DNA from: Stylophora pistillata
Taxonomy: Eukaryota
Assembly: GCF_002571385.2 (NCBI RefSeq)
Contig: NW_019218252.1
Location: 167,244-231,243, forward strand
Reading direction: 5' to 3'
DNA: 64,000 nt
The notes under the pieces were generated by a model. That model was given only the letters and a program-made list of their open reading frames with translations. It had not been told where the DNA came from and ran no database searches. Positions 1-40,442 of the stretch are shown here, one piece after another. Numbering within the stretch: position 1 is the stretch's first letter; every line of letters begins with the position of its first letter. The position numbers and the translations under genes are program-made.

Positions 1-2850
1 CCGCAAATGTTTCAAGCAGCCAAATTCGAAATTGGAAAGCCGATCGATCTGGAGATAAAAGCATCGCTAGTGAAAGATCTGTGGGAGGAATTGGGAATCG
101 AGTGAATGGAAATGAAACTGCAACATCTCTGCTTTGATTTTCTGGAGGAATCGAGACTGGTGGTAATTTTTTGGCGGAATTATTCGCTTCGGGCGACGGA
201 CACTTCTAAAATAGGTTTCCGGCCTTGTCTTTCTTTTAGCAGTTGAACACCAACATAGCGCTAACTCGCCGAAAACGCTTCAAAATGGCCTGAGACGCTA
301 GGAATCAACAAAGAAAACAACAAGGCAATAAGGTAAGTCCATTTTATTTCAAAACAAGACATTTTTTTCTCTCTTTTAAGGCAAACCGATAACATCCCAT
401 ACAAACCTTTATAAATATAATTTTTTTCGCAACACGGTAAGAGTCACGTCCGCTTTTCTAGCAGTGAGCTTGGGCTGCCTTTTTTTAGGCAAGAACCGAT
501 CAAAACAGCTAGTCTCGTGCCCAGACCTTTTACGGGCGTTTTTTTTTTCAGTTATAGTAACACAATAGGATCTGGGAACAAGATTCAGCTTATCCAGAAG
601 CCCAATGCTCCTGGCTTAGTATATCAGATATAAATAAAAATATCTTAACGTGTCCCTTTTTTTTTCAAAAAGAGAGTGGAAATGATACTCTTGCTCCCTC
701 TGCAACTCAGGGCGCTTTTTTTCGTGGGGGAAAATAGCCCCCCCCGGCCCCCCTTCCCTCTCCCCCTACAATCACTCCATAGATCCCTTTACTCTGCTCA
801 TTTTTCAGAACAGTATCACGTACAGAACTAAAGGGGAGAAGAGGATGACAGAATTGAAGAAAAACGGTTTTCTTTTAATTCGACTTGATCGTTTTTTTTG
901 AAAGAAAAAGAAAGAAATCTTTGTCACAAAGCACGAGACGGAAGGACTGCGTTGTAATTGTATGAAACGACTGAGATATTCGAGTGCCGAAAAATACAAA
1001 GGGAATACCAAACGGGAGAAAATATGAATTTTATGTTCGAGTGGCAAGAGCAATGTGTCACGAGTGTTCTTTTTTTTCGTGGTTGGTCGTAATGATTTAC
1101 AAGTGTCTTAGTTCCCACTAGTGAAACACTCGGCGCACCTTGTGTCGTTACGCGTTTATATCAATTTTTTCTTTTACACTGAGAACGTTTTTTTCTACAA
1201 GACAAAAAAAGGCAAAAGTTGTCCAAGCAACCGAGTTAAAACTTCCTTTTTTTCAAACTTCCTTAGAAAAAAGAGCGCTAAATTGCTTTTCTTGATCGTT
1301 CTTTATTTTTTTAACATACTCATCTAGACAGCTTCTGGAGGGTTCTCAAATTTACACCTGTTTATTTTTTTACGCACTGGCGTTTCTTTTGTTAAGCAAC
1401 TTTCCTAAAATAAATAACAAATGTTTTTTTTGGCCATAAGACATGTGAATTGATTGGTGTATTGTTAGAAACTTTGAAATACGCATAAGAGCCGTTATCA
1501 AACTCTGGTCCTATTAAAATCAGGAGATGAATCCTCTTCCATTTTTTTATAGCTTTGAAGACACCTCTGGTTATGTTCACGTTGTTGCTTTTGTTGTTAT
1601 TTTTTTTTCTCTTTTTATTACATGCTCACATCAATTCATTTGCTTCCTTAACTAGAGATTTTTTTTGTGATTCTTTTTTTTAATGGGGGAGGGGAGGAAG
1701 AGTGGTGGGGGAGACTAAGCCTTTAACACTGTCAAACTCATTACGACTTTGACAGCGTATAAACTCTTTGGTAAGTGTTTTTTTTAAGTTCCGTTGAAAC
1801 CCATGAGCACCCATTAGTTTCCAGCAACCTGTGTTTTATCTTTTTTATAGACGTGTGCTCTTCTACCCGCACACGTTAAAATCGTTCTCGAAGCCTTTTT
1901 TTCAACAGCTGTCGTTCCAAAATAAAGTTTTTGTATCTTATTGAAAGTGAGGAATTTTTTTTTTTTATATAAAGATCGGCAGTGCACAGACACACGGATG
2001 TCTTTAAATCAAGAGCCCCTTTCTTTGAGTGCCTAAATTATTTCCTGAATATTCCCATCTCGCTAGTTTATCGATTCATTTTTGCCGACATTTTGTGATA
2101 AGATATTATTTCCGCTTTGCACTGGTAATATTGCTCAACAGACCTTGTTTTCCTTTTGCTTTGGCGGCAGTTTCATCCAGATTTTTTGGCTTTTTTTATC
2201 TAAATTTACTGGACCTGAGTTCCACTGAGGAATAAAAAAAGTTGCAGAAATGACCCAGTGTATGATCTATGCTAATGCAATGAATTACGGGACATTAACT
2301 TAAGTAAATTTTTTTAATCAACCTTGCACGATGTTAGAGTTTTTGTGTTTTGATTAACTGAAGGCTTTTTTTTCATGTTCTCAATCTGCATTACTGTTTG
2401 TCCAGCTTTAAGGTCCCAGGACTGATTTGTAGTTGCGTGGTAAGTTACGTTTCCAATTCAAAACATCTCCAAGTGATGGCTCTGTTTTTTTAAAACGGTT
2501 ATGTAGAACAACACATTCACAGATTTTCAAGGACAAATTAAGTTTTTTTTGAGAAGCTTGTAAAACACAGGAGTACTCGCCATATAAAGAAATAAGACAA
2601 TGTTTTTTTAAGATGTCCTAGTGATATTTAAAATCTCGAAAAATGTAGAATATTCCAAATCTTTTTTTACGAGTACAGGGTCGGGTGGGATGGTGGCGTG
2701 TGTGGCCCATTTTCCCATGGGTCAATTCGACCGAGTACTATTGTAAAACCGGCCAACACGGCCATATTGGCAAAACAGGTTTTTTTCTAATGGTACTCTT
2801 TTCGTGACTGGTAGTCATTCCAGCTTGTTTAGTTCTTCTTTGGGTGAAAA

Positions 2851-5093
<2,243 letters not shown>

Positions 5094-8000
5094 AGGACTG
5101 TGGGTAAATGTAGATAGGTTTCATCTGTTGCACAAAATGTTTTTTTCAGACATGTGTCGTTTGAAGGACGTCTGCTATGACAGTTCCATTTATTATCTGT
5201 ACACACAATATTGCCTCCAGTGTCAGAGAAGCCACAAAATATCAGTTTGATAAGATAGAAAAATACTTAAATGAGATAAATAATGAACCATAAACAAGGA
5301 TGGTAAAACCATGCAACCATCTTGACATGCTCAGTGTAAGCGATTGACTGGGCACAAATTATCCCTTAATTCCTTTTTTTTTGCAGCTCAGAGTACATGA
5401 AAAAGTGCTCAATTCATTCTCTCTTTTGTCATTTTTTTTTTCATTCATTGTTTCAAAATTAACATAGGTTAACTGGATAGCATTCTAATGCTTTTTTTTT
5501 GCTAAATACACTTAGATATAAAATGGTGTTTGGTTTCTCTATTCTCTGTCCAAGGACTTATGTAGACACATGTAATTGGTATTAGTCATGCAAGGTAGTT
5601 GAAGTTACAGTTGAGGTCAGTAATAAGCCACCCGAGGATTGGATTAAAAAAAAAGGAATTGAATGTGTTTTTTTTTTGTGTTCTTTGTGTTCATTATGGA
5701 CTTCTAGAATATCAGGCCATGGATGTTTTTTTTTTTTTAATTTTAGTATTTGTCTGAAAAATATATATATATGTCAATGACTTTGTGTAAAGTTTCGTAG
5801 ATAAGCTGACCATTTGTGATTGAACTATTATTTTTAATACCATTAATTTTTTTTATACATTGTTCATACTAAGTAATCCCTAATAAGTAGCTGAGTAATA
5901 TCCTATTTTTTTTTTATTACATACATTCTGTTGGGAAGAAATTAAAGGGAACATCTTATTAAACCTTTTTTTTACAACGACGAGTAACAAAACAGCAGCA
6001 TTATTGTATTGCCTTGTTAGCAGTGGGTGCTCTAGAAAGATGGAATTTAGTTTGTGCGATAACAATGTAATGAAAGTGAGGAGTTTTTTTTTAGAGGAAA
6101 ACCTTTGAAAATATTGTGTGCAAGATTTTTGATGCATAAGAGACTAAACAATTCTGCCTCTTGAAGTTTAAAATCCTAAACACTTCTTTTTCCAACAGAA
6201 ATTTTTTTTTGAGGCAGAAATTGCAGAACAGTGCTTTAGAATTGCCATATTTATGTCTCAAAATGATGACTTCAGTTGAATAGAAACTTTCACTTCACTG
6301 AAATGTAGACAAATGTAAAGACTAAGAAGGTGGCTTTTTTGTTTTGCATTCTTACAGAAATGGTTGATGTTCTAATCAAGTTTTTAGAAAACCATAGGAG
6401 TTTTGGGTCAGTTTGATCACTCATACAGAAAATCTTATGGCAAGCGATCTGTACAGTATAGTTAGCTGCCCATAACTGTTAAGCTGTTGAATTGATGTTT
6501 TATTATTTTAATCAGCTAAGTATTAACCTTGATAAGTACAAAAAATATTATGGTAGAAATCCTGCCAAAAAAATTAAAGACTGCTTGTCTTTGCTAGACT
6601 TTTATAGGTTATTTGTGGTGGATTTATCCCGTAGAGAACAAAGAACATGTAAATTTCTCTTCACCAATTCTAGTTTTTTTTATGTTACTTTCTGGGTCAT
6701 CCACGGTGTAAAAACCTGACGAGGTTTTCTTTGTTTCATGAGGTATTGTTTTGCTGTATGCTATTGTTAATAACGTTTTGTTGTCTTAGTTTTATGTCAC
6801 TCGTGAGCTTCACAGGTTTTTGCACCGAGGATGAGCCTACTTTCTAGCCTGTGAAGAGAAATGCATTTCATTGCTGCTTAAAGATCTTTCTGAAAATGGT
6901 TAGCTTGCATTTTTTTGTAATTTTGGCAAATGGGTGCATAGTATGTTTTTGGTCAAAATTACAGCTGTTTTTTTTGTTGGTTTGTTTGTTTTTTTTCGTC
7001 AGTGGAAGGCTGGGGAGAGGAAAAAATGTAGCAAGTGGGCAAGTGACAGGTAAAGGAGAAAGAGGGGATGGGTAGGGGCAAATACTTCGATTAGACTGCC
7101 ATCCCATGTGGGGGAGGAATAGTAATACTTCTTTCTACTTCGTGTTTTTTTTACCAAGAGAAGCTCCCACAGACTTGTTTTGTTCAAGCAGATGTTTCCC
7201 TTGCTCAGCCTGGGAGGATAGGGGTCTCTTTTCTTTAAAGCAAACTTTCAAAAATGGTAATAAATTATTCATGATCAGCCTCCCAAAAAGATACCACCAC
7301 AGGTACAAAATCTTAAAAAATTTTTTTTTTTTATTGACAGCTATTCTTTGATATGATGTACATTAATTGCTGCCGATGAAATACCTTTGGTTGATCGTAC
7401 AATAAATTTCTCTTTCATTAGTTATATCGTCATTGACGTAAATATTGAAATGATGAGGTAACACTTTTGTCCAATAAATAATAGTTGCACGAATGATTTG
7501 AGAGCTGATGTTAGAAGTGCTATCTACTCTTTCAAAAACACGTTGAAACGTATCGCTCTGATTGCATATGGTTGGGCAATTCTCTAACAGAAAGTATATA
7601 CAATTGGAAAAGGTCACATCGTGTCGTCACCGCAGATTTATGAAAAATTATAAAGATCTGATTTTTCGTTAGATTCGGCGAAAATCAACATTTTAATTAC
7701 AGCAACAACATATGACTATATTGTTGACTTTATACTTATTAGATACGTTGTGCTTGGTGCGATGGGAATTTACTTCTTTCACAACTGTTTACCGTTTTTT
7801 TCGACCAGCAACGATTTGTATACGGAGCTACCTAGTTGCGATGTTATTAAGCTCGGCGATTGGTTTAAAATACGAAATTGCTGGAATCGATCAAAGTCAG
7901 CACGTTTCTTAGTTTTTTTGGTTCAGAAGTAGATTGCTTTTTAATGTAGTGTCGTGAACCAAACCACACGCTATCACAACGATGCAGTGTGCCATGAACC

Positions 8001-8262
8001 TTGTGGTGCGCATGCCAACCAGGAAGCGCGTTTTTTTGCGAGTAACCAACTCCGTTTTAGGTTTAAATCTGATTGGTTGAGAGGTTGAAAGGGGGATTCT
8101 AGACCAATCAGCAAGCGAGGTAAAGCAAGCTTACGATATTCCAGATTATTTTTTTCACTGAATTAAACAGCATTGTGAACAAAGGATTCCTCTCTGTTCG
8201 CGCACATTTTTTTTGCACCATGATTGGCTAGCTGTTTAAACAAATAACAGCCGCGCCTTGTG

Positions 8263-11200
8263 TTATTTCCGTCTTATCTTCATAACTACTGGTCCGTACG
8301 GCAATCTTCTGATCAGCTCAAGAACGTCCACATTTGCCATGTATGCCACCCTTTGTCCATTCACTTCAATAATTTCGTCCCCAGGCTTCAAAGCACCACT
8401 CCTTCCGGCCACGCTTTCCTTGAACACATATCTCACATGAATCGGAGCATCACCATAAAGCGAATCCTGGCCCCCTCCCAAAGAGAACCCTAATCCAGAG
8501 GCCCCCTTTTCAAGCGTTACTTCGGTCACAGAGGGTCCATGGGGTAATTTTTGGAGTCTTATGGGCCCACCGTTAGAGAAGAATCTCTTCTTTAAACGAT
8601 CGAAGGTAGAATGTTCTCCATTTTGTTTCGCTACGTCTAATGGGATTTTCTCGAACGTTGGCGGTGTGGCATTGTTTGCTTTTTTTAGGTTTTTCTTCTT
8701 AGTCAATTCCTCCCTCGTAGGCCAAGCATCAAAATGAGTTTTTTTTTCTTTGTTGGGATTTTTGTTTCGAAGAGGATTCGTCGCCTTAGATTGTTGTCTA
8801 TGTCCTAATGGCCGGCTTACAACAAGAGTAACCCGCTCAGGAGTGTCTTTGAGAAGTGTTAAGGCTTCTGAATTTGTTAATCCCTTGAAGGACTTGCCAT
8901 TGACAGACAACAGGATATCTCCCTTCTTAATATGTCCATTGTGAGCTGTGACGCTGTTGGAGAGAATCTGCCGCACCTAAAAAAACAAAAGCAAACAAAA
9001 TAAACGGCCGAAAGAGTTCACGATTTTACTACCACATCGCTTTAAGTGCTAACTCAAAGGACTCTGAAGTTCCAATAGATTTAAATCTATAATTAACAGT
9101 CCTCTGTGTTAGAAAGACAAATATTTAGTAAGATCTACCCTGCGTCCGCCAGTTCGTTGCTCGAATCCTGACGACGATAAGAGGAGGCTCGCTGGCTAAG
9201 TAAGCTCGTTTTTTTTCTTTCTGTATTTACAGAAATGAAAAAAAAAAACAAACAAACAAAAAAAAAACTTTTTTTAAAAAAAAAACAAGGAATAACGGTT
9301 GTGGGAAGGAACGAGTTGATACGATGATTTTTTTCACTATGCTAGAGGACATAGAGGGGGTTGGAGAAAGGAAGAAGGTCGAGGAATTTTTTTTGAAGAG
9401 GAACACAGTAGGAAGAGAAATAGGGGGATGAAGATGAACGAGTGCTGTGGGAAGAGAAGGACCAGCAGCGTCTGGTGAGAGGGAAAAACATGGAGAAGAA
9501 TTAGACTACTGGGGAGGAATTAGAGAACAATACGTGAGAATACAGGATGGTAGATTGGAGGGTAATAGGAAAGGGAAAGGATTAGGATAAACAAGGAATT
9601 CATAAGGAGACAACGTAAAAAGGATAACGCGTGATTCCAGTAAAGTTTCGAGTAAGAGACAAGAAAGTGCAAGAGGAGAGGTTTTTTTCTGGGAGCGTCA
9701 ATGATACTCACCATGATGTCTTCATGAGATGTGTCCACTCCCCCAGTGACACTCAGTCCCAAACCTGCCCGGCTATTCTTCAAGAGTTCTACAGTAAACA
9801 CCTTAGCGTCGTCACTACTGACTGCCCAACTGACGCTTTTACTGACAGGCTTGACTTCTTCTTCATCCTCTGTTGTTGTGGAGTCATACCCACCAGGAAT
9901 ACCATCAATAATGGTCACGGGAACGTCATCCTGACGAAGGGTCAGTGTCGGGCTCTCTGGCTCCAGGTAGGCGGGGATGTAGTCATCAGAATCATCCAAC
10001 GAACCACATGGAGAGGCCGGAGAAGGATCATTACTAAATGACGTTCCGAAAGACGAGAGGCTAATCAATGACTTGGGGCGTTGGCCCCTGTCAGGAAGTG
10101 GGCTCACGGGCAGATCTGACGCAGTCTTTGAAATTGTGCTCGATTCACGAGCGGAGGAGACGATAGGTTCTTCAGTGTCTGGAGCACGCCTTCCTTCCGC
10201 CACCAGTTCAATTTTTTTTCTTTCATTATTCTTCTTCCTTGCCACAGTGAGTTTCACCAGCGGTGGTGTGTTTTTTTTAATGTTCAAGGCCTCATTATGA
10301 GTTACTCCCACAAGACAATTATCATTGACCTGTAACAGCTGGTCTCCAACTCTGAGTCGATTGCAACTGGCGGCTGGAGAGTTGGGCTGAATATTTTTTA
10401 TATACAGCATGCCTAGATGGGTGTCCAGACCTCCCACGACCATTAAGCCAATAGATTTCTGTTCTTTAAGAAGCTGCATTCAAGGAAAAATGAATCGCTT
10501 AGCCATCTACGCATTACTGATTTCATAGAATGAACAAAGTTATTGTCTGTCATTGAACACCGATTCCATTTCCCAGCGGTAATAGGTTTGATCGATCACA
10601 CCCCTAACATTTTCCAGGTTCCCTACACGAGAACGAAATGACTAAATCAAACCTCACTTTTAACTTGGAAAGTGACTGAAGGTCATAATCAAGTTCACTC
10701 CTCCAATCAGTGTCACCCTCTGGGTCCACTGTCACTCCTTCTCCCATTAACTGTTCATATTTTGAATAAAAGATTCCGTTCCACGAAAGAACAGAGATCA
10801 ATTTTTTTTACGAATGATGGGTTATTAAACCCTCAGTACAACGACACTCACCTGCACCTCCTTTTTTTCTTCATCAACATCCTCCTCCTGGTTCCTGCTG
10901 TCAATAAGCCGCTGAAGGTTTCCAGTGTGCCAGTGATCCGCCTGCCCAACTCTTCCTTCTGACGCTTCATTCGTGTGGGAGTCGGCAAGAAGCTGAGGTA
11001 AAGAGGATGACCTTCTACGGAAGAAAGGAGGGGGACACTTTTTTTCAGGAGTGGATCGCTTCGTCGCCTCATCAACAACAGAGGGACGCTGAACTGGTTT
11101 TTTTCCGGCAGAAAAACTAGCACTTCTAGCGACCTTATTACCAGAAAAAAGTTGGCCCGAATATTCTTGAGTTGAACTACAAGTATCATCCCATTCAGAA

Positions 11201-14200
11201 GAAAAGTCTGAGCTATCAAAGTCATCCGTATTGTATGCATTGACCTCATGAGTGACATCCTGTGTGACTACTGGTTCTTCCCCTTGTGACAAGTGTGGAT
11301 AATCATTGTACTCATTCAGGTGAATTTGTGAAGGTAATGGGTCAGTGTTTTGTTCCCATATCTCAGGGTTGTTGAAATCTTTTTTGTCAACTTTTTTTTC
11401 GTTCTGTCTTGACAATGTAAGCTCGAGGGTGTTAGCTGTACTCTTCACGTTCAGGTCAGTAGGGATTGGAGGTAGCGGTTTCGTTTTTCGAGGCTCGTCA
11501 TTGTGCAGTACTGGCGCGACTATATCATAGTTATCTTCTTCATCATTCTGTTCCGTTGGAAATGTATCCTTTTTTTTTTTACTCCTACCGAGAATAGGAA
11601 TTGGAGGTAAAGGTTTGACAGTGGGAACACCAATTGTGCTCGATAGGTCTTCGTTTCCACTACCGATGTTCTTATTTGGAACCAGCGTTTTTTTAGGCGG
11701 AGGTGCTGGCTTAAAATTAGGAGGGCCCGGGGATACCGGAGAAACTGATGTTTCATCTCCTGTGGCATTCTCCTGCACAGTAACTGCCTTCAAAGATAAA
11801 GGTGGTTTTTTTGGTTTGAATCTAGGAGGGCCTGGTGAGTTGGGACAAAGTGGCGCTATATTAAAGTCGTCCTTCTCAGCTAGACTTGAACTGGCTTGTA
11901 GTGCCAATGGAGGTGGCATAGCCTTAAAAACTGGTGTATCAGGCGATGGAAAAACGTCACTGTTCTGGGCTTCGTTATCTTCAGTGTCAGAGGTAAGATT
12001 CCCAGTCATAAATGGTGACGTTCCCAGTCTTTCTTTGTTGATTTTCTGTTTGAGTTCATCTATAGTGTCTTTTTGTTGTCTACTAGGAGTACTGCCAGAC
12101 TTTAGGAAAGTGGGCTTCTTTGGAACAGGAGGTTTATAAGGAGATTTCGTTGGGAAGTTATCTTTAACGGCATTGCGCTCTTCATATTCAGCTGTTATCA
12201 CGGCGCTTACATTCGGTTGTTTTTCACGTCTCGGGGGAGATGGCGGAAGTGGCCTGTTTGCAAGGGATGTATCCACATCAGCAAGAACATGAGATTCCAC
12301 TACATCATCATCGTCTGTGAACAAACTGGCACCTTGAATATCAATCTCAAATTCCGTCTCATGATGATCCAAATTATCATTCTCGCCATTCGCGCTTTTT
12401 TTGCAAGATTCATCTTGTTCTATTGAACTACCATCTTCACTTTGCTGAAAATTTTTTTTTTTTGTCGCCACTGCAGGCCTCATGCCTTCATCATTTGTTT
12501 TTGACACACCAAATTTGTTATTGTGCCTTTCTACATAGTCTTTCCTCTGTGAGGATGGATCACTTAATTTAAAAGTATATGGCAATGTCTGTGAGAGAAC
12601 TTTAGTTTCGTCGAAAATTGGCTTTTCAACGTCGTCGTAAACCGAGCCATTTCTCCCAATCTCTTTCTTTTGTTTACTCAAAAAGTCCTTGTTTGTTGTG
12701 GGTGGAGGAAGAGGCGGACTGGACCTCTTTGATCTGGAAAACAATCCTCTTTTTTTTGATACAGATCGACTCCTGTTCTCTCGATCCTTTGGCTTCTCTC
12801 GGTTCTTGCTTCTACTTCTACTGCGAAAGCCAAAAAGTTTCTTGGTCCAAGATCGCGATCTTTCATGTTTTTTTGGATTTGTGTCAAATGAAGTGTCAGG
12901 TGATTGTAGATGGTTGGGATCAGCTTTTTTGTCCTTACTTTTATGACTTCTTGAGAACAGTTTCTTTGTGGACTTCTCTTTCATTGGTGAAGATAGTCTT
13001 TCTGGCTCTTTCTTGAGTTGCTGTGTTGGTTCTTGTGACGGAGAAATTGCTTTTGGTTTAACATCAGGCTTGGAGGGAAGCACAGCTATACCCCCTGGAA
13101 GCGACTTTCGAGGTGTGCCACTGGCCTTGCTTTTGGCAGGCGGTCTTGCAGGGATAGGGGGAGCTGGCCTCCTTTGCTTGGTGAAATTCTCAGCCGGATC
13201 TTCACCTCCAGTTACTTGTTTTTTTTTTTTCCCTTTTGATTTGAAATGTGTGTTACTTGGTGCTGGCCCTCTCAAGTCAATTTTTTTAGAATAGAGTTTT
13301 GACTCTACATTTGCTTCCGTCGAATTGATCGAGGAGCTATTTTTTTTGGGTTCCAAATCAGGTGTTCCTCCAGAGTCCGTGTCAGAAAGTTCCTCTTGTG
13401 ATGAAAAGGCGATGTTGGTCTGACCAAAACCTTCCGTTGACATCATGGAATGGTGAAGGGTCTCTTGATATGTATTTTCTGTTGATCCTTCCTTACTTTG
13501 TGAGGATTTTGTGTCCAGATTTGACAATTCCGTGAAAAATGATGGCGGCTTACAGGACGACGAGCTTCCTCCTTCACTGTCCTGCTCATTGCCAGAGCGT
13601 GACGAGTCCTCTAAAGTCAATATCCGATCCAGTAAAGCAAGCTCTGCTTCTGCTGCTCCGGCCTCTGACCAAAGCTCCATTTCCGGAGGTAAGGGGGGTG
13701 GGGACATTGCATCGGACGAATCTGTGACGGCAACGTCATCTTCCAGTGGGGCAAGATGCTTCCAGGAACCGTCTGCTGAGCGGTCTCTCTCGTGTACAAC
13801 AGGAAAATGAACTGACACGCCTCCAGATTCAGGTATGAATCCTTCAGCCTCCATCTCTATCACATTTCTTCTAAAAGATTTCTTCTTTTTCTTTGGAGAG
13901 GATTGAGATGGATGCACAGATGATGATGATATGGCTCTGTCTTCTTCAAGGGCTGAATGCGCAGGGCTGGTTTTAACGTTAACAACTTGTAAACCATCTG
14001 CAAAACTTTCCAAACTTTCTACAGTGAGGGGTGAAATCCTCGGTGGAGGAGGGGCTGGGGGTAAGCTTTCCATGTCATCATCGGGTGGCTCCACATGCGT
14101 CAATGAATCGGCTTCATTGGCATCACTTGACGTTATTGGAGCAACAAAATCCACCTGAATAGGGTGGGCTAGTGATTCATGGAGTCCATTGCCTCTACCA

Positions 14201-17200
14201 GAGGAACCAGATTGCTCCGATGGTTTTTTTCCTCTTTTTGACTTGCTTGGCAAGGGTAATATCCTTTTCTTTGAATTCTTTCGTTCTGGTTTGACGGGGT
14301 GTGGTAGAGGGTTGGTGTTATGAGTAGGTTGTACATCTCCAAGTGGCGATGGAACCGACTCATCAGATTTGACAGACCAGCTAGATGACCTGTTGACTGG
14401 ACAACGAGGTGGTGGAGGGGCAGGAGGAAGGCTTGACATGTCATCATCTACGTCATCCAGCGGCTGAATAGGCACGTCACTAAATGCATCTGGTATGCCA
14501 AATATGGAAGTATGTCCATGGGAAGGGGATGATGATCCAGATTCTACCATAAGATTCGAGCTTTCAATATTTGGTGAATGACTTGGCGATTCCCGATCAA
14601 ACCGACAAGAATGAAGTGGCGACGAAGAAGTCGAGGAATCTGTGTCCAGACTGATAAATTGTCTTCTTGGTTTAGGTGGCGGCGGAGCACTCGGTAAGCT
14701 TGGGAGACTTTCTAGCTCGTCATCAAACAAACTTGGCGGCTTGATTGGACTTTTATCCAGTCCATTCCACGGCAGAGACTCCAAAGCAGCTGCATCTTCC
14801 ACACACGAATAGTTCATGGCCTTTAAGGGTACTTCTTGATGTATGCTTTCATCTTTTACATTGTCTCCAAACAATCTAGGGGGTTTAATTGGTGGTATCT
14901 GTTGTTTTAAGTTCTCAGGAAGTCGTTTCTGCTTCTCTTGTGAAGCATATTGTATATCGGACTTTTGCTTTAAGTTCTCCTTCTTCTGAATTTTTTTTGA
15001 AGAGGGTGACTGTGCGTCTTCACTGAACAGACGCGGAGGCTGTGGTGCTAATGTGCTTACTTCCTCTACTTCTGGGTCGAAAGATAACGCAGATTCAATA
15101 CTTTCATCAACAAAGTCTTCGAAATTGGCTGGTGGGCTCAAAGGTACGTTATCTCCAATGTCTTCCGCTTTTTTTTCAGGCACTTCACCAGAATAACTTT
15201 CTTCATCTGTGTCATTTCTCGGCAATGGTGGAGGAGGAGCAGAAGGAGGCAGACCATCAAATTCAGTTTCTTCCAGTTCACTGTCTTCGCATCCCTCTGT
15301 TGTAATTAAGTCATCAGTAAGTTCTTGAGACAGAGTTATAGAGGTAACACTTTCTTCTGAATCTGGTATAATGTTTGATGAAAGTAAGTTTGAAACTGTT
15401 CCACCAGAAGTTTCTGCTGTTTTCAGAGAGATAAGCTCATTGGGGATGTCCACCCAAGGTGTTTGGGCTGCCACACTAGGAAAAACACTCGGTTGAGCTT
15501 CCCGGTCTGCTGGGCTGATTAGGTCAGGTATCTCTTCAAGTTGTCCCTTTTTCTTCTGAAATGAGACTGTTTCGTCAAGGTATTCGGTCGGCTTCGGTGG
15601 TTTAGGTCCGGCTTGGGCCACAATTCTTACATCTCCCCTTGGGCAGTTCTTGACCATATTTTGGACATCTTTAAGGGCCATTCCTTCTAGGGAGGAGTCG
15701 TTAATCGACAAAAGAACATCTCCAACCCTGAAATGCAGAGGACACAGGATGCTTTCGTTACTTACACGCGCTGGTATATAATAGAAAGCAGGGGTGAATT
15801 TCGGAAAAATCTTGGTTTTTTTTTATCCTAAAGCTTCCTATTTCAACCTAGAGCATGAACAAACCATTTTCACCTATTTTTTTCAAGTAAAGGGATTTAC
15901 CTTAATTCGCTTAATTAGGCAGAAAAAAAAAAGCATTTTTTTAAAAAATGCGCCACGTGAAACAAAACAAGTAATGATAAATAGTGATTTCATCCATTTC
16001 TTCGGTTTCGCATTATTCATACCTGATATTCCCATCTTTTCCCACTAAGCCAATTTTTTTAACATCTGACACAATGACCTTCCTCTCCCTTGTTAGGTCC
16101 ACTTTAAAGCCAAGGTTTCTAAACTTTCTCTGATAGGTAATAGCAAATGGAACATTCTCTACTCTTCTACCTTTTTTTGGTTTCACGTCAACGCCTATTT
16201 TGTGTTCAGTTGTATTTGGTGTTGTGATGTTCTTTGTGTGGTGACCTTTAACCGAGGATGGAGGACCTTTACAAACTCCAAATTCAGGTTTTGCTGAAAA
16301 TATTTCTAAATCCAGGTCTTGTAGACGCTTCTCGTAGCCACTTCCCTCTTTTTTTGATCCCGTGCTCGTCTCCAATAATTTCTCTGAATGAGTGTCCTTT
16401 GTTTTCATTTTTTTCGATGGCAAACCGGGTTTGCAATTGCCTGACAACGAAGTTGCCTCCGCGCTAGTTGTTCGTTCAGATGTAAACTCATCATCCTTTT
16501 CGTCTGAATTCAAATCGTTGCAAGCATCAAGCAAAGACTGAAAATCCCAACTCGTACCTGTTCCTTTGCCAGGAGAACAAGCTTTTTTTTTGCTAGAACT
16601 AGATTCCGGTGAGATCTCGTTGACTTCAATGGACTTGATTCTGTTGCTTTCATGATGATCAGTTCTGAAAGGGTCTTGCTCAAGGAATTCCTTCATTCTT
16701 GGACTAAGGTCGGGCGGTGGAGAAACAACGGGAATGGGTGATAAAGACAAGTCATAGTCAATTTTTTTTGGAACTGGTGAAGGAGGGGGAGAAAATGATG
16801 GAGGAGCTACAGACAGATCGCTTTCTAAAAAATCGTCTACATCCAGTAATGGTGGGGGCGGAGGTGAAGATGGCAGTTCTGGAACATCCTCTTCAACGTT
16901 TACATCTTCATCACTTCCTAAATAAGAGTCATCACTTCTACCTAATTTTTCCGATTCCCTGCTTTGCTGAGACGCGCCAAGAGATACAGCTTTTTCCGCA
17001 CACGGCAACGTTTTTGCCTCTTCTCCCTTTAACGACGATGATGGCTCACCGTGGACTCCGCATTCTTGAACGACAGTAGTATCTTGACCAGATGATAAAT
17101 CAGACTTGGATTCACTTTTTTTACTTGATATTTTCTCCTGACGATCTACTCCTTCCCGTAAAATCACAAACGTGACAACTTCTGTTGGTTTCTTGAGCAA

Positions 17201-26200: not shown

Positions 26201-29200
26201 GCTTTGTTCTCCTTTTCAATATGATCAGAGGACATTTTTCTACCTTTCTTCATCAAACTCTCTGCAGACTGCGCTCGAGGAAGGGTTTTTGAAATCTGTG
26301 TTCCAGTTCTTCCTGCTTTTTTTTCCAAAGACCTTTTTTTAAACCTTGATGCTGTCACCTTTTCCAACACAGACTGGCTTACCTTTGTGAAAAAAATAAA
26401 ACAAATAAAACTTCCATACTTGTGATTAAGATTTTTTTTTTTTAGATTGTAGTATAAAGTACTGACAGCAAAATACTTAATAATATAGAGTCTATCTGCC
26501 AAGGAATTATTCATGAGAAAACTGTTTGTTACCTGTGTTGAAATGACCAGTTGTATAAGCCTTGGTGATGCTCTAAGTAAGTCAACTGCCTCCTGTTGTG
26601 TGACGCCTATCAAGCTGTGGCCATTGATCCATAACAGCTCATCACCCTCCTTAAGGCGACCATCCCTAAATTTTTTTAAAGAAAACAAAATTTCAATTTA
26701 AAGTTAATTTGTTATAAGTAATAGTTATTGAAAGTTACCGATAAACATTTACTTGGATATATGTAGGTAAAATGAAATTCCAGTTTTCTCCCTTTAAGAA
26801 TTGTTAGTAATTAATAATGTGGGTGGAAATACTGGTATAAAAAACATGCAAACTTAACTAGTTACAAATATTTTTGACCCAAATTCATTTTAAGCTGGAA
26901 GATAATGCATATATCAAAAAGTGCATTTAGATTCATAGTATAGCAATAATATATAGTTTTAACAGTTTGTATGACCCAAATGCATCCCAGGCAGCTATAA
27001 TTCATTTAATAAATTTAATCCAAATTTTTTTCTTAACATCTATTTCAATCTACTGTTCAACTAAAATTATATTAATTTTTTTACTAAAAGAATCAATGCA
27101 TAAATTACAAATAATGGAAGGTTTATTCTTTAGGGTTAAATCTTTTTTTATCAGCATGGTTAGTAATTTTATCTTAAAACAGGATATTGGGTTATTTGCG
27201 CTTTTTTTTATTTTTGTAGAAAAAGCGCAAAATAAGTATTAAATATCATTATTATTATAATTTTTTTTCAATATTGAATTTGTTTTTAGATATTGAGTTT
27301 TGTGTCTTGGCTGTCATTGATTTTTTATGTCACAGTCACAATTTGAAATAATTTGCACCTGTAGAATTCCATCACTGTTACTTTATCTATACTGACTGTG
27401 TAACACTGATTTTCTAATATGCACAAAAAGTCTTGAATTTAAACTTGAACCAAGACAAGGTCAGGATTGTATACTTAGGAATTAACTCTTTGAATAATGA
27501 ATCTATTTGTAAGTAGTTGCTGCAACCAAATTTAAAAATCTGTATTCCTGTGAATGTATCATACCTTGTGAGTCTTTCTTCAATGTTTTACACAACAAGC
27601 TCAAATTGTGGTACTTAATTTTGATATTACAATGTCAATTGAAGGTTTCTCATGAAAAAAAATTATGATTTTTTTTTTTTTGATGTAGTAGTAACAGAAA
27701 CTCTACCTCTTCAGTTTCACATGTCATTATTGATTGTGAATTATTAAAAAAGCTGTATATGGTTCATTGAGTGAAAGAATATATTTGAACATTTGACCTG
27801 GCATAACTGTAAAACAATGCTGTTACATTAATCAATACATGTGAAATACCGCACCTTGCAGCAGCCCCACCAGGGCTCACATCAGACACAAACACACCCT
27901 TCTCTCCTGTTTCATGGTTGAGTTTCATTGATATTTGTACTCCAAGTCCACGGCTATCCTTTAAAATATGTATCTTCTTCACTCTGTTTTTCTGTGATGA
28001 AATATCAGGTGGACAATTCTCAAAATATGCAAAGCATCAAAACAATATATTTAATTACATGAAAATAAAATTTTAAAGTTCATTGTTTTTATTATTTCCT
28101 ATCATTTTCTAACATGACACTATAGTCAATAAAAAATAGTTTTAAGTCTGTTGACGTATCTAATTTTCATTAATTTTATTAAGGTCATTTAATATCTTTG
28201 TACACAGTGTAGGCCATACCTTAGGTAGCAAGACATGTCTGTTTTTACATCATAAATTATGCATTTTTTTAACTTATTCATGAAAGGATTTCCTATCATT
28301 TACTACGGTGCTGTTGCATCTGTTATTGCTTAGAATTTCATTTATTTTCCCACATAAGCACCAGTTACAAACTGAGTGTATTGATAAGTTACAATGAGTA
28401 AAAGTTGAATTCTGTGAATATAGTAGGGCTACACTTGGTCTCCAATATGCACGTCCACAACTGATCAGCCAATCTTCAAATTTTCTTTATATAAAATACT
28501 AAGACCATATTTACAAAATATTTCTCCCCAAAGAGACATTAGTCTGTTGCAAGTTCCATTAGTTCCAGCATTCAGTCACGATAAGTAATAACATAGGCTG
28601 GGATACTTATTACTAACAGTACATGTTTGAAGCTAGCCCTTTTTCAGTAAATGCACGGTTTGAAAACAGGAGTAAAAGTTGATGGTGTAGTCTGCTCACC
28701 CATGAGATTAGACTAGAGATCAAAGGGCTCCACTACTGTAGGTAATGAGGTCAAAATATCAGTCACTGTTGCCCACAACAGTCCTTCTACGGACTTCTCA
28801 ACGGGGATGACCAGACTACTTGTTCAATAAGTTATCACTTCTGTCAGATTTACAGTTGGGAAACTTATGAAATTGCAAGAACATATCACAAACATCTGAT
28901 TAAAATAATTAAAATTCTCTACTAGAAATGGCCTATAACATTTTCATCAATCTGTCAATTACAGGTGATAAATGGTTATTTATTTTAACACTATATCTGC
29001 AAAAGAATGTGAAATTTTTTAGAGTAAAAATTTTTTTATTTTAATCCTGTTAAAATTGACTTTTGCATTTCAAAGTGCAATCTTAGATATTTTTTTTTTT
29101 TAACCAAACCATGACAATAATGGAAAGAAAATACTCTTCTACCCTACTTTTTTTTGGGCCAGACGTGTAAAAGTCAAATTAAAAATTTGTTTGATTAAAC

Positions 29201-32604: not shown

Positions 32605-34948
32605 TTACTCCCTAGATTTCATCTTTTCACGTGCCATCTTCTTCTTGGACACCTTTTTAACCTCGACCTCATCCTCGCCACGAGGAACCACTTGCTCGCG
32701 TTCAGCTAGGATCATCTCTATGTGGCATGGGGAGCTCATGTAGGCTGTTTTTTTCAAGGTTAGACTAGTTTAAGTTTTACAAGCATATCACTTCCATAGC
32801 TTATCTTTTTTTTTTCCATCAGTGACCAAGACAGAATTTCTCGTTACAATATCACTACAATGTCGAGCACACAAGTGATGAAAATAATGAATGAATTAAA
32901 CGTGAATTAGGAGATTGATAGTTGTTTTTTTTCCAAATTCTCCCCCCCCAAAAAAAAACATTCTAAGAGCTGTATGGCAGACAGTAAGGAGAATTTTTAT
33001 TGAGATCTTGGGAGTGAAACAAATAGGAGCTTACTACTCCAATTTTTTTGGATACATAAATATTAGTTACTAGATGAGAGATCCATGGGTAGAAATTGTG
33101 CCTGAGATTTTGGGCAAGGCCTGAGAAATGTCAATTACTGTCATCACAAACAATCCTAAGAAGACAATCCTTAACTACAGTATCACAAAGATGCTGAAGC
33201 AATCAAACCTTTTGCTGAAGTGACATTCTGAAGACTTGAGAAATATTGCCTGCCTATACCCTCCCCATTGCTTAAATGTTTTTTTAGAAACAAAGTGACT
33301 TACGATTGATACGTCCATGGGCTCTGTAGGTTCTCCTCCTCATCTTGGGAGCAGCATTGACTTGAATGTGCTCAACCACCAACGAGTCCACATCCATTTT
33401 TTTGATACAGAAACAAACACAGAGGACAATGAGGGAAGACTGTGCAGGGCTAAATTTTTTTTATACTGGTAGAATCACTCATGTAATCATAGAGATTTAG
33501 GGTTCCAAATTTCCATCATCTGGTTGCTAAGGCAATTGAAAAGGAACTTGGCCGCCACCAGAATTCCTGGCCATTTTTTTCAAGTCCTGTTGATGTTCAT
33601 CATGTAAGCCAGTAGTCAAGAAATTAAATATTTTTTTTTTTTCTTATGTGCTTTTATATACTCAGCTGGTGATTGTTCACCAAAAGGAATGTTTTTTTCA
33701 AAGAAACAACCAACAAAACTTTGTGTTTTTCTATTTCACAGTGAGGCATCCAATAACCAAAAAACTCACTTTAAATTCAGCATTGCTCTCAGCATTTTTG
33801 AGGAGCTGATTTTTTTTCTCTGCACTTTTCTTTGGCCAGCGGCCCTGGGATCCTGGAGCATTGAAGTTTTTTTTTTGGAAATGTAAATAATGTAAGTTTA
33901 TTTTCTCAATCATTACCTCTCCCAAGATTTTTTTAGTAATTCTCCTTTAAAACTAGCATACGTTTTTTTTTTTTCTTGTAAGTTAGTTTTTTTTTGCTGA
34001 TAAGTTTTTTGATTCCCAATACCAGTTCACAAGATAAGGTAGCTATTTTTTTAGGAGAAGTTACACTCTAATCAAGTCATGAAGTGTTACGTATAGAGAA
34101 AGTCTGGTGTGCTAGGATTATATAGAGGGAAATATCAGTCTCCTTTCTATTAAGCAGTTCTACACTGAAATTTGGGACTCTATATGATAAATAGGGCAGC
34201 AGACCTGATGGGAAAGGCTCCATTTTTTTAGTCACTGCAAATTAAACACTAGCATATAGCAGATTGAGAAATAACTTCTTATTTTTTTAGTTTCCAACTA
34301 TTAATTTACAGAAGACAAAGCCAATAGAGAGGATCATGCATGACATTGGTAGCTTTGGTTGATATGTCAGTTATTACTTCTACCAATAGTATACTGATAT
34401 TTTTTTATATCAAGACACAAGTTGACTATTGATCATCAGCCAATCAATGGACAACTATGGACCAGCCGTTGTTTTTGAAAAGTGACTGGCTTTCAGCAGA
34501 TATATTGCCCACCCATCCACCAACTATCGGCTGAAACATATCAGCCGAGGCCACCCATAGTAAGCTTGGCGGCTAATTTTTTTCTTCATGGTGGCGTTAA
34601 GGTACTTGGGAGAGCATTTTAAGAATCGTGGACTTTGGAAGTTCTTCAGTAAAGCCAAGTTATTTCAAACACATCGTACACGTAAATGACAAGTTTTTTT
34701 TTATTATGGGAGACATGGTATACATATCATACCTGAGCTTTACGTCCCACGCCACCATTGAATCTTCGGAAGGGAATGATCTGCTTCTTGGCAATAACAT
34801 CCTTGAGATATCTGTTTGCCTTACGTATGTGCATACCCTTGATGGCCACAGCCGTCTCGTGTGTGTTCTTGTTTTTTTCACGGAGGTTAGAGCCTCGTGC
34901 TTTACAAGACTTGGTTGGATTCTCCGGATCTTTTTTTTAACGAGTCAT
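32605..34948 (-). CDS. RPL17: 60S ribosomal protein L17 (uL22). Exons ~34732-34948, ~33766-33872, ~33304-33401, 32605-32744. Disrupted as written by T7 tracts.
   Basis: [42 protein letters not shown]...GGVGRKAQ; [22 protein letters not shown]; [37 protein letters not shown]. Confidence 0.93.
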
Positions 34949-35336
34949 CTTGAGTGACCTTTACCTGCAAACACATCGTGCATCGACATAATGGTTTTAA
35001 GTCTATCATATTATGCAAGGAAATCAAAGGGAAATTATATACATAGCTTTTTTTTTTTCACTCGGATACCACACAGTCCTTCAGACAAAACGAAATAATC
35101 TTCGAAAAATGCTAGGAATACTTAGACATGTTTCCCAAAGTTAGCAAATAATTTATTGTGGAGTAATAGATTCACTATCAGCGCGATTTTTTTACATTTA
35201 AAGTAATACTTCATTTATGTTATTGGGCAGAAGTACGCACTGATGTTGAAACTACAAACATCGGAAGTCTACCGAAAATTGAAATTTTTTTTGGGGAGAT
35301 AATTTGAGATTTTAACAACATATTGAAGTCAATCTC

Positions 35337-35498
35337 ACCTTCGAAGAGGAAGGTTGAAAGAGGACATCTACCCAGACTTCTTTTCGATATGACTAGCTCA
35401 CTACGCAAGCGCATTCATCAATTCAAAATGGCGTCTGATTCGTATCGCTAGTTGCAAGAACTTTTTTTGGTTTCCCTGGCCCTGTCTTGTAGTTCACG
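35337..35498. promoter_or_regulatory. Compact bidirectional promoter shared by RPL17 and the NPL-FKBP gene, including the RPL17 pyrimidine-rich (5'TOP-like) first non-coding exon
   Basis: Minus strand cctttcaaccttcctcttcgaag|GTGAGA at ~35337-35362. YY1-like AAAATGGCG at ~35425-35433. FKBP ATG at 35499. Confidence 0.6.
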
Positions 35499-38400
35499 AT
35501 GTTTTGGGGTGAGTATACCATTTTTTTCCTTTTTTAGTTCCTTTTCCATATGATCAAAATCTAAAGAGTGGAAAAGCGACTCCTCCAAACTGTAATATTT
35601 GATCAGCTAGATGTAGAGTTGCGCGCGGCATCGGGTTGAATAAATTGTTTGGTTGAGTACAAACACAGTAATCGTTTAAAAAAATCCACTTTTAATTTAC
35701 AACAATTATAAATTTTATAAAGAAGCTATAAATGGTTTATATATATAAGGCATGTATAAAGCAAATGCTGCTTCAATATTGGCATTTTAGAACGGCCAGT
35801 GCGCGCTCAACCGTATTTGCACAGCTTATGGTCTTTAACACGTGGAACATATTTGTGAGCTGGAGAAAACGTGTAAAAACTGCCCAAGGTGAAACCTAGC
35901 ATACTGTATGTTAGATAAAGTTTAGTTGAGGAGATTGCTAAAGCTGTGCTCTTGGAAGAATCATTGGAGACCGGAAGGCTCTCGATTCAGTACCAGCTGT
36001 TAAACCTTCAACCCGGCCCCTTGGAGTGATTTAAATGTAGCTCCTTCTTACGAGTCCAATGTTTTATCTTGCAAAGAGGTTAGGAGAACAGACAAACTTA
36101 TCAGTTCGAAGGCTTGTCTTGAATTAACACCTAATTTACAAGGAAATGTCAGGTAGTCAATGGGGTAAATTACTTATCTGATCTAAGAATAATTTTATAT
36201 ATAATAGCTTTCATCAAAGTGCAGTTATGCAAGTTTCTTTACAACAATTGTTAGTAGCCTGTGGTACCTGGACCCTACTATGACATAGAGAACAGTTAAG
36301 GTTTTATTCCTTGGAGTGTACCATGGACCTGTCAAAAGAACAGTTTTTACTTCCATACTTATTTTGTTCTCAGGGGTCACTCTTGATTCTGGAAACCGCT
36401 ACACCCAGACAGTGGAAAAGTCATTTCATTTATCAATGGCTGCTCTGGGCTTTCAGAACTTTTCGTCAGTACCAGTCACAGTAATGGTTGAGGTAGATAA
36501 AGCTCAGTTTGTACTGTGCACATTTTTTTTTGGAAAAATTCCACAACAGCCTTTAGACTATTGTTTTACAGAAGGAGAAGAGATAACTTTCTTTACAGAA
36601 GGCCCTGGGGATGTACATCTAACAGGTTTGTTCTGTTTTCTTGTTTTTGGTCACTATCATGATGGAGTAATTAGTCATTTTTTGGAATTTCTTTATTGAA
36701 TTTTTTTCAAGGAGGAATAAACAGGCAGACATAACCATATACGAAATGTAGGCAGAAGGTTTTTTTTTTTTATTTTGCTTTTTATTTTGCTTTTTATTTT
36801 GCTTTTTATTTTGCTGGCTTTTTTTTGGATTAGAAATTCATTATACTGTGTTCTTGGTGACACTGTGTGAGTTTCCATTTTTTTTTGTCTAGAGCATGTG
36901 CTTTTATTTTCTGTCAAGGGAGCAGGGATGGTGTAGTTTTTTTAACGCTTGCCTCCAACTGCTGTGACCTGGGTTTGATTCCCCAACCTGGTGTCTTTTT
37001 TTGGTTGAGTTTTATTGTTGGTTCTCCTCCTGCTCTGAAGGTTTTTCTCTGGGTCCTCCAGCTTTCCTACCTCCAAAAACAGCATTCCAAATTCCAATTC
37101 AATCCAGAAACAGTGGACAAGAAGGGCCACCTCATGGAATGTCAATTGCTATTGATAAATTGTTATTCCCATTCTATTAGATCACAGATATTGACATGAT
37201 GTACTTGTTTTTAAAAACTCACCTGTATTTTCATTGAATTGTGGTCTCGCTGTAGCATGTTACACAAACATGAACCCAATAATAATAAGCTTTCCATTAA
37301 ATGATAATACTTCATGGATAGGTTATTTAATGGAAGAACCAAGTACTTTGGAATTTGAAGAGTCTGCAGAGGAAGGAAGCAATTCTGATTCGGCAGAGGA
37401 GGACGATGAATCATCCAGTGAGGAAGTGACTCTTGGAGACTTATTTCAAAGTGGAGATTTGATTGGTGATGGCAGTGATGATGAGGATGAAGAGAGCGGA
37501 GATGTGGACTGGGACCCGTTGAAGGATAATCCAAAGAAAAAAAAAACAAGCAAGAAAAAGAAGAAGAAAAAACAGGCTGAGAATTTTTTTTTAAACAATA
37601 TTATATCTCTAATGGATGTTGAACAAGCTGAAGTAACTATGTCAAATGATGGTACGAGTGGTGAAAATGAAGATAGTACTGGAGGGCAGAATAGCACTCA
37701 ATCTGAAAATGAACTCAGAAAGAAAGATGGAAACAAGAAAAAGAGGAAAACGAGTGAAACAGAAAATCAAACAATTGAAAATGGATTTAAATCAGCTAAA
37801 AAACTCAAGAAAAAAGCCAAGAAAACTCAATTAAATTCACCAAACAGTGATGGCAAGATAGAAAAGACAAAAACTCAGGATTTTTTTAGTGGGCAAACTT
37901 CATTAGATACTAGCTCACCTACAAAAAACATTGACACTCAAGTTAAACAAGAAACACAAATGAATAAAGAAAAGGTGACACAACCGAGTTCTGGTAAACA
38001 GAATGATCAAGCACAAGCCACACCGGTAAGTATTTCTCAGGGTTGTAGCTAAGAATTTACACTGCTGGCAGAAATTTCAGGTGAGGAGGCTCAAAGGTGG
38101 GGAATGATTGTAAGTGTGTAACCTTAGAAGTGCCCATTGTAGTTTACCAAGCAATTGCCGGCCAAAAATCTAGCCTTTTTTTACTGCTTTTTCATTCAGT
38201 GAATTTCACAGGCACAGGTGCTTAGTGACAACCCTTTTTTTTTGCCTGATATTATGGAAAATTTTTGATTAGCTGTCTTTTCATTGTAAGTAATTTTTTT
38301 AGGGTCATTGCAGGTGAAAAGAAACATGGAAGGCTGCAAACTTTTGTTTTCCTTGGTTTAGAGGTAATCATGAATAAAATTTTTTGAAAAGATGGCAGTC

Positions 38401-40442
38401 TTGTTTGGTGTTGTGTAGTCAGTGTATTATTAATGTTGGCATAGTTCCAATGATAATCATTGGCATAATCTTTTTTTAGGAATATTTTTCTGCTTGATAT
38501 GGATGACACAATAGTTTGCAAAATTAACTTTTTTTTAAATAATTACTCTGGGATCTTGTGATGTATTTTAAGCAGGCAAAGAGGAAAATTTTTTTAGGAG
38601 GAACTGTGTTTGAGGACATTACAAAAGGAACAGGACCAGTGGCCAAAAAAGGACAGATGGTAAGGATGTACATAAATAATACGCAGCAGTACTTGTATCT
38701 TATTAACCAAGCGTGAGGGCTGTACTGGGAGAATATCGGCCTGAGGTCTTGACAGTACAGACCTCACTACGTTCGGTCTGTACAAAAAAAGACCGAGGGC
38801 CGATATTCTTCCAGTACGGTCCCGAGCAAGCTTGGTTAATAAGAGATTTATTATACGACTGAAGTTCAAAGGGACACAGGTGTGGTATCATTCGGGACCA
38901 TTTGGGACAGTGTCCGGTCAAATGCTGACAGAATATTGACCGGCAATAGAGCATTTTGATTGGTTGATTTTAGTTATTGGCCCTCTGACTGCCCGAGTTG
39001 TGTAATAATATAATGTACATGCCATGATCTTCACATATTTTTATGTGATCTACTTACAAAAACAAACTGTGTCTTCATAATTGTGCTACCATAATACTGC
39101 AACTGTCAAGCATTGAACACTGAACAAAAAATGTTGTGGTCTTTGTATGGCTATCTTATTGAGACAGTTTAAGCACAATTAATGTTTGTCCATGAAGTTG
39201 CAGTAAGTCAGTTGTGATATTTCATAAACTGGAAGTGGTAAGTTGGTGATTCAAGTAAACCACAAGAGAGCACCTGAATTGATCAATAGAATATTTAACC
39301 TTTCAGCTGTGGTTTTAAAGGTGTTTGTAGATCTTCCTTCTTGTTTGTTTGTTTGTTTTTTCTTGTTTTTTGTTTCATTACAATTTTTTTTTTAATTTCT
39401 TTCAACAGGTTCATGTATATTATAAAGGAAATTTAGCAAAGAATAAAAAGCAGTTTGATGCTTGTCTGAGTGGACGTCCATTCTCATTCAGAGTTGGTGC
39501 AGGAGAGGTCATACAAGGCTGGGATCTGGGTGTCACTGGTAGGTGTTTGAACATTTATTCTGCCAAGGCAATCTTCCTTTTAATTTGAATTTGAAGCCTA
39601 GAATTTCTTTATGCCAAAAACTGATATATGTCAAAATTAATTGCGAGTCAACCAAGGTTGTTCTTTTTCACACAGGAATGCAAGTAGGTGGAAAAAGAAG
39701 ATTAATAGTGCCTCCATCACAAGGGTAGGTTATCTGTTACAGTATCCTGGAGACATCTTTGATACGCAACGAACTTAATGTAGTGCTTAATTTGATCATG
39801 TTATGTGAAAGTACCCCACACATGCTTTTTGTAACAAGTAACTACCCCAGGTGAACTTTGCAGCCATTTTATTAGTAATCAAGTTTGTCAACTAGGGCAC
39901 CTGTTGAGCTCAGTCAATGTTACAGGTGAAAATGGCAATTACTGTCACATTACACTGGGGCACGTATCACAATGCTACAGGTGAAAATGGCAATTACTGT
40001 CACATTACACTGGGGCACGTATCACAATGCTACAGGTGAAAATGGCAATTACTGTCACATTACACTGGGGCACGTATCACAATGCTACAGGTGAAAATGG
40101 CAATTACTGTCACATTACACTGGGGCACGTATCACAATGCTACAGGTGAAAATGGCAATTACTGTCACATTACACTGGGGCACGTATCACAATGCTACAG
40201 GTGAAAATGGCAATTACTGTCACATTACACTAGGGCACGTATCACAATGCTACAGGTGATATCCTCAATGTAACAGTCACTTCAAAACTTAGTGACAGCC
40301 CTGGTGCAGAGTCTCGTACAATATCTTACAGAGTTGATGTGTAAATATGATTGTCATTTGCAGATATGGTCATAAAAAGATGGGACCAATTCCACCAAAC
40401 AGTACATTGGAGTTTGAAGTTCAACTTGTGAAACTTCAGTAA
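35499..40442 (+). CDS. Nucleoplasmin-like + FKBP-type PPIase nucleolar histone chaperone (FKBP39/Fpr3-4/AtFKBP53-like). Exons 35499-35508, 36374-36625, 37322-38025, 38576-38659, 39409-39538, 39676-39724, 40364-40442.
   Basis: MFWG start; NPL core (FHLSMAAL, LCT..GKIPQQPLD, GPGDVHLTGY); acidic then Lys-rich linker; FKBP domain (VYYKG, FD, F.VGAGEVIQGWDLGV.GMQVGGKRRLIVPPSQGYG, IPPNSTLEFEVQL). Confidence 0.9.
36918..37150 (+). mobile_element. tRNA-derived SINE copy in FKBP intron
   Basis: gggagcagggatggtgtagt (A-box-like) ... gggtttgattcc (B-box-like) ... ggtttttctctgggtcctccagctttcct ... ttccaaattccaattc, typical of anthozoan SINEs. Confidence 0.65.
38699..38843. mobile_element. Short palindromic MITE
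   Basis: ttattaaccaagc...gtactgggagaatatcggcc mirrors ggccgatattcttccagtac...gcttggttaataa. Confidence 0.75.
39916..40259. repeat. 55-bp minisatellite, ~6.2 near-identical copies, in the last FKBP intron
   Basis: Unit tacaggtgaaaatggcaattactgtcacattacactggggcacgtatcacaatgc at 39921, 39976, 40031, 40086, 40141, 40196 and partial at 40251. Confidence 0.95.

Follow-up and report, generated by a model that had tools for sequence, protein, structure and literature searches.

The DNA examined here is a stretch of 64,000 nucleotides from the coral Stylophora pistillata (RefSeq assembly GCF_002571385.2, NW_019218252.1; C468:167244-231243), called the window throughout. On its plus strand lie the exons of GOLPH3 (GPP34; 2757-5093, with joints 3034/3111 and 3358/4668 in RNA contigs) and a nucleoplasmin-like FKBP (NPL-FKBP) gene (36316-40442), and on its minus strand the exons of a multi-PDZ gene (8263-26688) and of uL22/RPL17 (33284-34849). 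Crossing all of them on the plus strand is a lattice with a step of 59 bases, whose sites are in part occupied by short poly-T tracts (block 421-38595; 248 tracts of exactly seven T, 38% of 650 sites occupied). The genes and their strands are those that a first, sequence-only reading of the window had assigned, and its statement that the tracts are T on the plus strand irrespective of the strand of the gene is correct as well: the tracts give FF in plus-strand genes and KK in minus-strand genes. Our analysis makes it nearly certain that this lattice is an artefact produced by software and has no biological basis.

The window holds 281 T runs of at least seven, 42 such runs of A, two of C and none of G. 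Pairwise start-to-start distances between its T runs peak at 59, 118, 177, 236, 295 and 354, and a period scan yields a single sharp period with the best value at 58.99-59.00. When the register was tracked from 362 to 38650, one lattice of 650 sites accommodated 249 of the 262 T runs of at least seven, and the 13 off-lattice runs in the block correspond to the background rate of the window's last 25 kb. Starts of T runs of at least six are strongly phased in the first 38.7 kb (Rayleigh test: n=283, R=0.86, p~1e-91), whereas the last 25 kb of the window show no lattice in the same test (R=0.06, p=0.86); period scan and sliding register together confine the 59-base peak to the block. The A runs show no lattice. 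The register shifts at four places only, always by small negative steps that add up to a net -5: by -1 near 2340, by -1 between 8748 and 9208, by -2 between 19071 and 19178 and by -1 between 24260 and 24543 (all plus strand; the second and the fourth of these intervals contain homopolymers).

Occupied sites consist of exactly seven T, and the bases flanking them on both sides are at the background T frequency (~0.31-0.36). The 401 unoccupied sites are indistinguishable from control 7-mers, i.e. from ordinary sequence. Between the tracts the 52 bases are unique; the 7-mer matches at lag 59 all involve T tracts or tract edges, and lag-59 matching in the window revealed no non-homopolymer lattice. 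The sequence-only reading had described T7 tracts every 59 bp from 362 to 38595 that keep their register over about 650 periods with a net drift of about 5 bp, and had regarded the intervening sequence as unique and the whole as no tandem repeat; all of this is confirmed by the numbers above. Site occupancy varies by region, from 18 to 53% per 4 kb, with the minimum of 18% in 12001-16000, a stretch that falls within the long, unique 1628-aa open frame of the multi-PDZ gene (10825-15711, minus strand).

For a comparison with sequencing reads, Logan contigs from three DNA runs (X1, X3 and X6; two studies, three samples) and one polyA RNA run (X14) were aligned at 80% likeness to the 5.9 kb between window positions 600 and 6500. 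One of the DNA sets, from 2016, may be the source sample of the assembly. At every occupied lattice site listed in this interval the covering runs have native non-T letters, identical across runs and at full depth (e.g. CCGGA.G at 1070-1076 and CCCCCAG at 1188-1194), and none of the aligned run contigs carries the tracts. The RNA contigs with the two GOLPH3 joints named above, both GT..AG, carry the native letters as well. Changes from T to A, C or G number 224, 218 and 216 in the three DNA runs, with every other type of change at 10 or fewer; about 251 are expected from the 52 occupied sites in the interval, where ~69% of the native bases are non-T. Outside the tracts the run contigs differ from the window by ~0.5%, which is ordinary polymorphism, and indels are few, among them one additional T after position 2339, where the phase first steps. 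Within this interval and at the level of contigs, the tracts are thus absent from the animal's DNA and mRNA. The public runs that contain this stretch bear a coral label, and among them the top share of sampled 31-mers was 0.57, about as expected when each tract breaks the surrounding words, which are then absent from the reads.

One further difference in this interval concerns positions 4137-4202, where the same 27 other letters replace 66 bases of the window in all three DNA runs (joint 4136/4203). It is a separate local misassembly or indel allele, and the divergent stretch includes two T runs outside the lattice (4120 and 4133).

Other copies of a repeat show the original letters at the near end of the block. 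Positions 1-480 form the terminal part of a repeat present in more than 40 copies (96-98% identity), located directly after an N run (C468:165771-167243) that stops exactly at the start of the window. At 421-427 the window reads TTTTTTT where all seven other aligned copies read AACGTTG, and at 480-486 it has T7 where the other copies read GTG..., again at unchanged length. Because length is unchanged relative to the seven other copies, the tracts (hereafter stamps) are substitutions of seven bases and not insertions. With seven native bases replaced per tract, false sequence in the block amounts to ~1.7 kb in total. The T7 at 362-368 (plus strand), which is both the first homopolymer of at least seven past the gap and the first lattice site, is shared by all 7 other aligned copies at the corresponding place. 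The start of the lattice at 362, as given by the sequence-only reading, is hence right with respect to the register; as an overwrite it does not stand, for this T7 is native and the first demonstrable overwrite is the one at 421. Copies of the 480-nt repeat are often arranged as inverted pairs ~0.3-1 kb apart (e.g. C132:90026-90505(-) with 91461-91940(+), and C170:307481-307961(-) with 308221-308701(+)), and several adjoin N gaps; the arrangement is suggestive of a young element bounded by long terminal inverted repeats.

At the far end the last tract is followed after ~100 nt by a repeat of ~320 nt that resembles a miniature inverted-repeat transposable element and has internal inverted symmetry (38696-39018; more than 40 copies listed, 91-95% identity). 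It is likely to mark the end of the original contig. Some of its copies stand in tandem (C730:51059-51968). The NPL-FKBP gene continues past the far limit of the block, and this limit is therefore no biological boundary.

The part of the window beyond the block has features of its own. A 55-bp minisatellite (39915-40259; 6.3 copies, 99% identity) sits in an intron of the NPL-FKBP gene and accounts for the lag-55 signal seen over the last 25 kb. Single N letters at 41669, 61496 and 63834 and an N10 at 45769-45778 are probably gaps almost closed by a gap filler.

Inside genes, the stamps overwrite conserved codons at the expense of neither strand's reading frame. In the uL22 exon the minus-strand A7 turns FLL into KKN in frame, as compared with the solved chain 9eho_P; A(K/E)FLLQLLKNAE is the sequence of solved uL22 chains at this place. 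Damage to an essential gene had been pointed out by the sequence-only reading. The deposited GOLPH3 carries FFF, FL and F, likewise in frame, in place of the DCI, DM and I of its orthologues: GOLPH3 of Pocillopora, Nematostella and Exaiptasia reads FWNDCISSG, LLFDMTTHP and SAFIK, and for the last of these the Stylophora pistillata protein has SAFFK. This damaged protein is on record as PFX17490.1 (the submitters' own model), as XP_022803379.1 (RefSeq) and as UniRef100_A0A2B4RLW4. A0A2B4RLW4 stands alone in its 90% cluster, and the orthologues from seven other stony-coral genera form one cluster. Since the public proteins hold FFF, FL and F, the stamps are part of the public record and are not confined to the copy analysed here.

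The same 59-bp lattice is found in at least 7-8 further blocks on other scaffolds, with differing letters and lengths (A7, T of at least seven, A26, G7). Scaffolds with 59-nt lattices are C9, C19, C169, C695, C896 and C1127; C8 and C996 are probable. A search for four tracts of at least seven T at 59-base steps gave thousands of matches on both strands, a count inflated by long tracts, and a period-60 control on such tracts was uninformative because the long-tract blocks (C19, C8) satisfy 59 as well as 60. A chain of exact-T7 tracts was used instead: three of them at 59-base steps gave 26 matches against ~0.001 expected by chance (a rough estimate), located on C169, C468, C695, C996 and C1127 and in two true low-complexity repeats. 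The A26 block (C19:~1083962-1094725) combines 33 unique bases with 26 A to make 59, is ~93% occupied and has its last tract ending 17 nt before an N gap. The A7 block on C169 starts 48 nt after an N gap and does not drift over 9 kb, the block of T runs of at least seven on C9 starts at most ~700 nt from a short N run, and the G7 block (C896:10777-13674) has a period of 59. Four examined blocks (C468, C169, C19 and C9) adjoin N gaps at one end. The remainder of C468, as sampled, shows no lattice. The phenomenon consists of discrete blocks, each with the fixed stride and a stamp of its own.

A pattern scan of 185,579 prokaryote genomes returned, among the matches listed, only chance matches, true tandem repeats and kilobase poly-T runs. 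The last of these are unbroken stretches of 1.3-2.7 kb in long-read contigs of metagenome-assembled genomes (MAGs) from soil (L049, L059, L085, L086 and L116; MFD*.bin, nanopore). They are probably another assembly or basecalling artefact, unrelated to the window.

A base-exact stride over 38 kb, sharp boxes of seven nucleotides, a single strand, indifference to genes and absence from the reads together require software acting on an assembled string. The sequence-only reading had considered a technical or in-silico overwrite as one option, and this option is supported by the peak that occurs only in the block, by reads free of tracts and by the same-length overwrite of conserved codons.

Several features of the blocks bear on how such a fault may have worked. 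The fault probably worked at contig level within the primary assembly, given that four blocks adjoin gaps and that the C468 block starts no more than 421 nt from a gap and stops ~100 nt before a repeat. The evidence leans slightly towards stamping at an early stage, before a later read-based correction that would have restored ~62% of the 7-nt stamps and almost none of the 26-nt stamps, and that would also have edited a few homopolymers, leaving the four negative steps. Partial, regional occupancy for 7-nt stamps and near-complete occupancy for 26-nt stamps is the pattern expected from such a correction. At the first phase step (-1) the window has a T5 (2340-2344, plus strand) where the reads of two runs have T6, and two A6 runs (19098-19128, plus strand) lie within the interval of the -2 step; all-negative steps in homopolymer-bearing intervals, together with T5 versus T6, suggest that the lattice was exact in an earlier version of the sequence whose homopolymers were edited afterwards. 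Among the modules of the assembler ALLPATHS-LG are late ones that fix bases and indels and could act as such a repair. According to the published description, the assembly was built from Illumina data only, with ALLPATHS-LG (HAPLOIDIFY) followed by L_RNA_scaffolder and three rounds of SSPACE and GapFiller (PMC5730576). That each block took the letter and length of its stamp from a native homopolymer at its start, in the window the T7 at 362, has a little less than an even chance. The probability that the first lattice tract is an in-register native T7 by coincidence is ~5e-4, and over the blocks the stamps (many T or A 7-mers, one 26-mer, one G7) resemble a spectrum of native homopolymers; both observations suggest that a native run was re-stamped downstream. 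Taken as one scenario, a reproducible and undescribed software fault, in which a native homopolymer is re-stamped every 59 bases to the end of the contig and the result is then partly repaired, is considered possible and rather unlikely.

A number of points weigh against this account. The read evidence covers 600-6500 only, out of 38 kb, and comes from Logan contigs instead of raw reads, and contigs show presence better than absence. At its near end the block has an N gap within 421 nt of the first stamp, and at its far end a high-copy repeat but no N, so that one end of the block is without a gap. The published pipeline names no separate polishing step (PMC5730576), and any later repair must accordingly have been internal to the assembler or unreported. 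Support for the seed idea comes from a single native T7 that is in register. On C9, A runs of at least seven stand between the gap and the start of the T lattice, so that the seed cannot in general be the first homopolymer past the start of the contig.

Among the alternatives, the one that survives best is also an artefact: a late fault in a text-level script, e.g. one with a 60-byte buffer holding 59 characters, with no later repair, so that partial occupancy and drift would be properties of the script itself. We consider this variant possible and rather unlikely. The exact period in base space and the sharp boxes would suit it, 59 = 60-1 suggests a fixed buffer, and the authors' own GenBank protein is already damaged. 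The -1 and -2 steps, however, lie at homopolymers where the reads differ in length, which argues for editing after stamping; moreover, occupancy is regional (18-53%) and dependent on length (38% at 7 nt, ~93% at 26 nt), as fits a read-based repair, and letter and length of the stamp vary between blocks. Far less probable is an origin in sequencing chemistry or raw-read error instead of in software working on assembled sequence. Homopolymer errors are a common type of read error, which is the extent of what speaks for it, as direct support is lacking; Illumina reads of 100-150 nt cannot keep one base-exact register across 38 kb, the assembly was built from Illumina libraries only (PMC5730576), and the contigs of the 2016 DNA runs, possibly from the source sample, are native at full depth and free of stamps. 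That the pattern is present only in the analysed copy, as a planted control or through file corruption, has nothing in its favour and a negligible probability, because PFX17490.1, XP_022803379.1 and A0A2B4RLW4 contain the FFF, FL and F encoded by the stamps. Weakest of all, with practically no probability left, is the chromatin ruler that the sequence-only reading had thought conceivable, in which poly(dA:dT) tracts every 59 bp (3x59 = 177) would position nucleosomes over 38 kb: periodic T tracts do stand on one strand of the deposited sequence and poly(dA:dT) is generally known to disfavour nucleosomes, but over 600-6500 the tracts are missing from the DNA contigs of three samples and from the mRNA, they are also missing from the other copies of the repeat, they overwrite conserved uL22 and GOLPH3 codons, their length is exactly seven with sharp edges, and the same period recurs with A26 and G7 tracts elsewhere in the assembly, beside scaffold gaps.

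More specific software causes were also considered and set aside. A fill value ("2-bit all-ones" or "N written as T") as the general cause is ruled out by the G7 lattice on C896 and is further contradicted by tracts of exactly 7 or 26 nt and by the 33 + 26 split on C19, which does not correspond to whole bytes. FASTA line-wrapping (60 bytes over 61-byte lines) would give 59.016, whereas the observed drift is negative (58.99) and comes in discrete steps at homopolymers. The loss of one base per 60-column line does not agree with the reads, which show substitutions and no periodic indels. A chain copy from 59 bases back (overlapping memory copy) is hard to reconcile with the presence of occupied sites downstream of unoccupied ones, barring a later repair, and also with the absence of a non-homopolymer lattice.

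The lattice is real in the deposited file, is not a feature of the genome and holds no biological novelty. Its practical value is that of a data-quality warning, as work on the model coral Stylophora pistillata has this scaffold set as its standard reference. Blocks with 7 to 26 false bases in every 59 are found on at least 8-9 scaffolds, and the ~1.7 kb of false bases in the window are spread over GOLPH3, the multi-PDZ gene, uL22/RPL17 and the NPL-FKBP gene. False codons (FF on the plus strand, KK on the minus strand) have already entered GenBank, RefSeq and UniProt, and at the loci concerned they can bias inferred rates of evolution and signs of selection, the calling of variants, the mapping of reads and analyses of expression or methylation. 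If the re-stamping fault is true, other eukaryote assemblies made with ALLPATHS-LG, SSPACE and GapFiller, and the proteins derived from them, may carry it unnoticed. For genome scans in general the lesson is that exact periodicity in base space calls for a comparison with reads before any biology is proposed.

Among known systems, a 59-bp minisatellite or other tandem repeat has the period of 59 bases in common with the lattice, in which, by contrast, only the seven T recur and the other 52 nt are unique; the lattice is therefore no minisatellite. A genuine tandem repeat of 59-60 bp was seen in a Planctomycetaceae MAG (JAITKS010000437.1; L115:3998-4302), with ~6 units, each containing a T7, and there the whole unit is repeated. 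The likeness to the periodic A/T clusters (PATCs) of Caenorhabditis elegans and to poly(dA:dT) tracts, which disfavour nucleosomes, lies in A/T homopolymer tracts that recur periodically over many kilobases. PATCs have a period of ~10 bp with statistical phasing, occupy introns and intergenic regions and are seen in sequencing reads. In the lattice, on the other hand, the period is exactly 59 bp, the tracts have a fixed length of 7 nt, interrupt conserved codons and, as the repeat copies and the run contigs show, are missing from the DNA of the organism; instead of a helical (~10 bp) or nucleosomal, statistical phasing there is a sharp 59.0 with binary 7-nt sites. A PATC-like or nucleosome-positioning signal is excluded by this absence from genomic DNA. 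The third comparison is with assembly errors made by software. No paper describing a 59-nt homopolymer-stamp artefact turned up in the literature searched. Nor are we aware of any described error that advances in base-exact steps of 59 nt and leaves homopolymer stamps whose length and letter are specific to the block, and in this the lattice differs from such errors. Otherwise it resembles them, as they lack read support, are blind to genes and strands and spread into annotation, and it is probably, like them, confined to units of one assembly: the stamps are absent from independent reads of the species (three DNA runs and one RNA run, over 600-6500), they change conserved coding sequence at the same length on either gene strand (AACGTTG to T7, FLL to KKN, DCI to FFF), and they recur in the assembly with the same machine-like parameter, as 59-nt lattices on other scaffolds.

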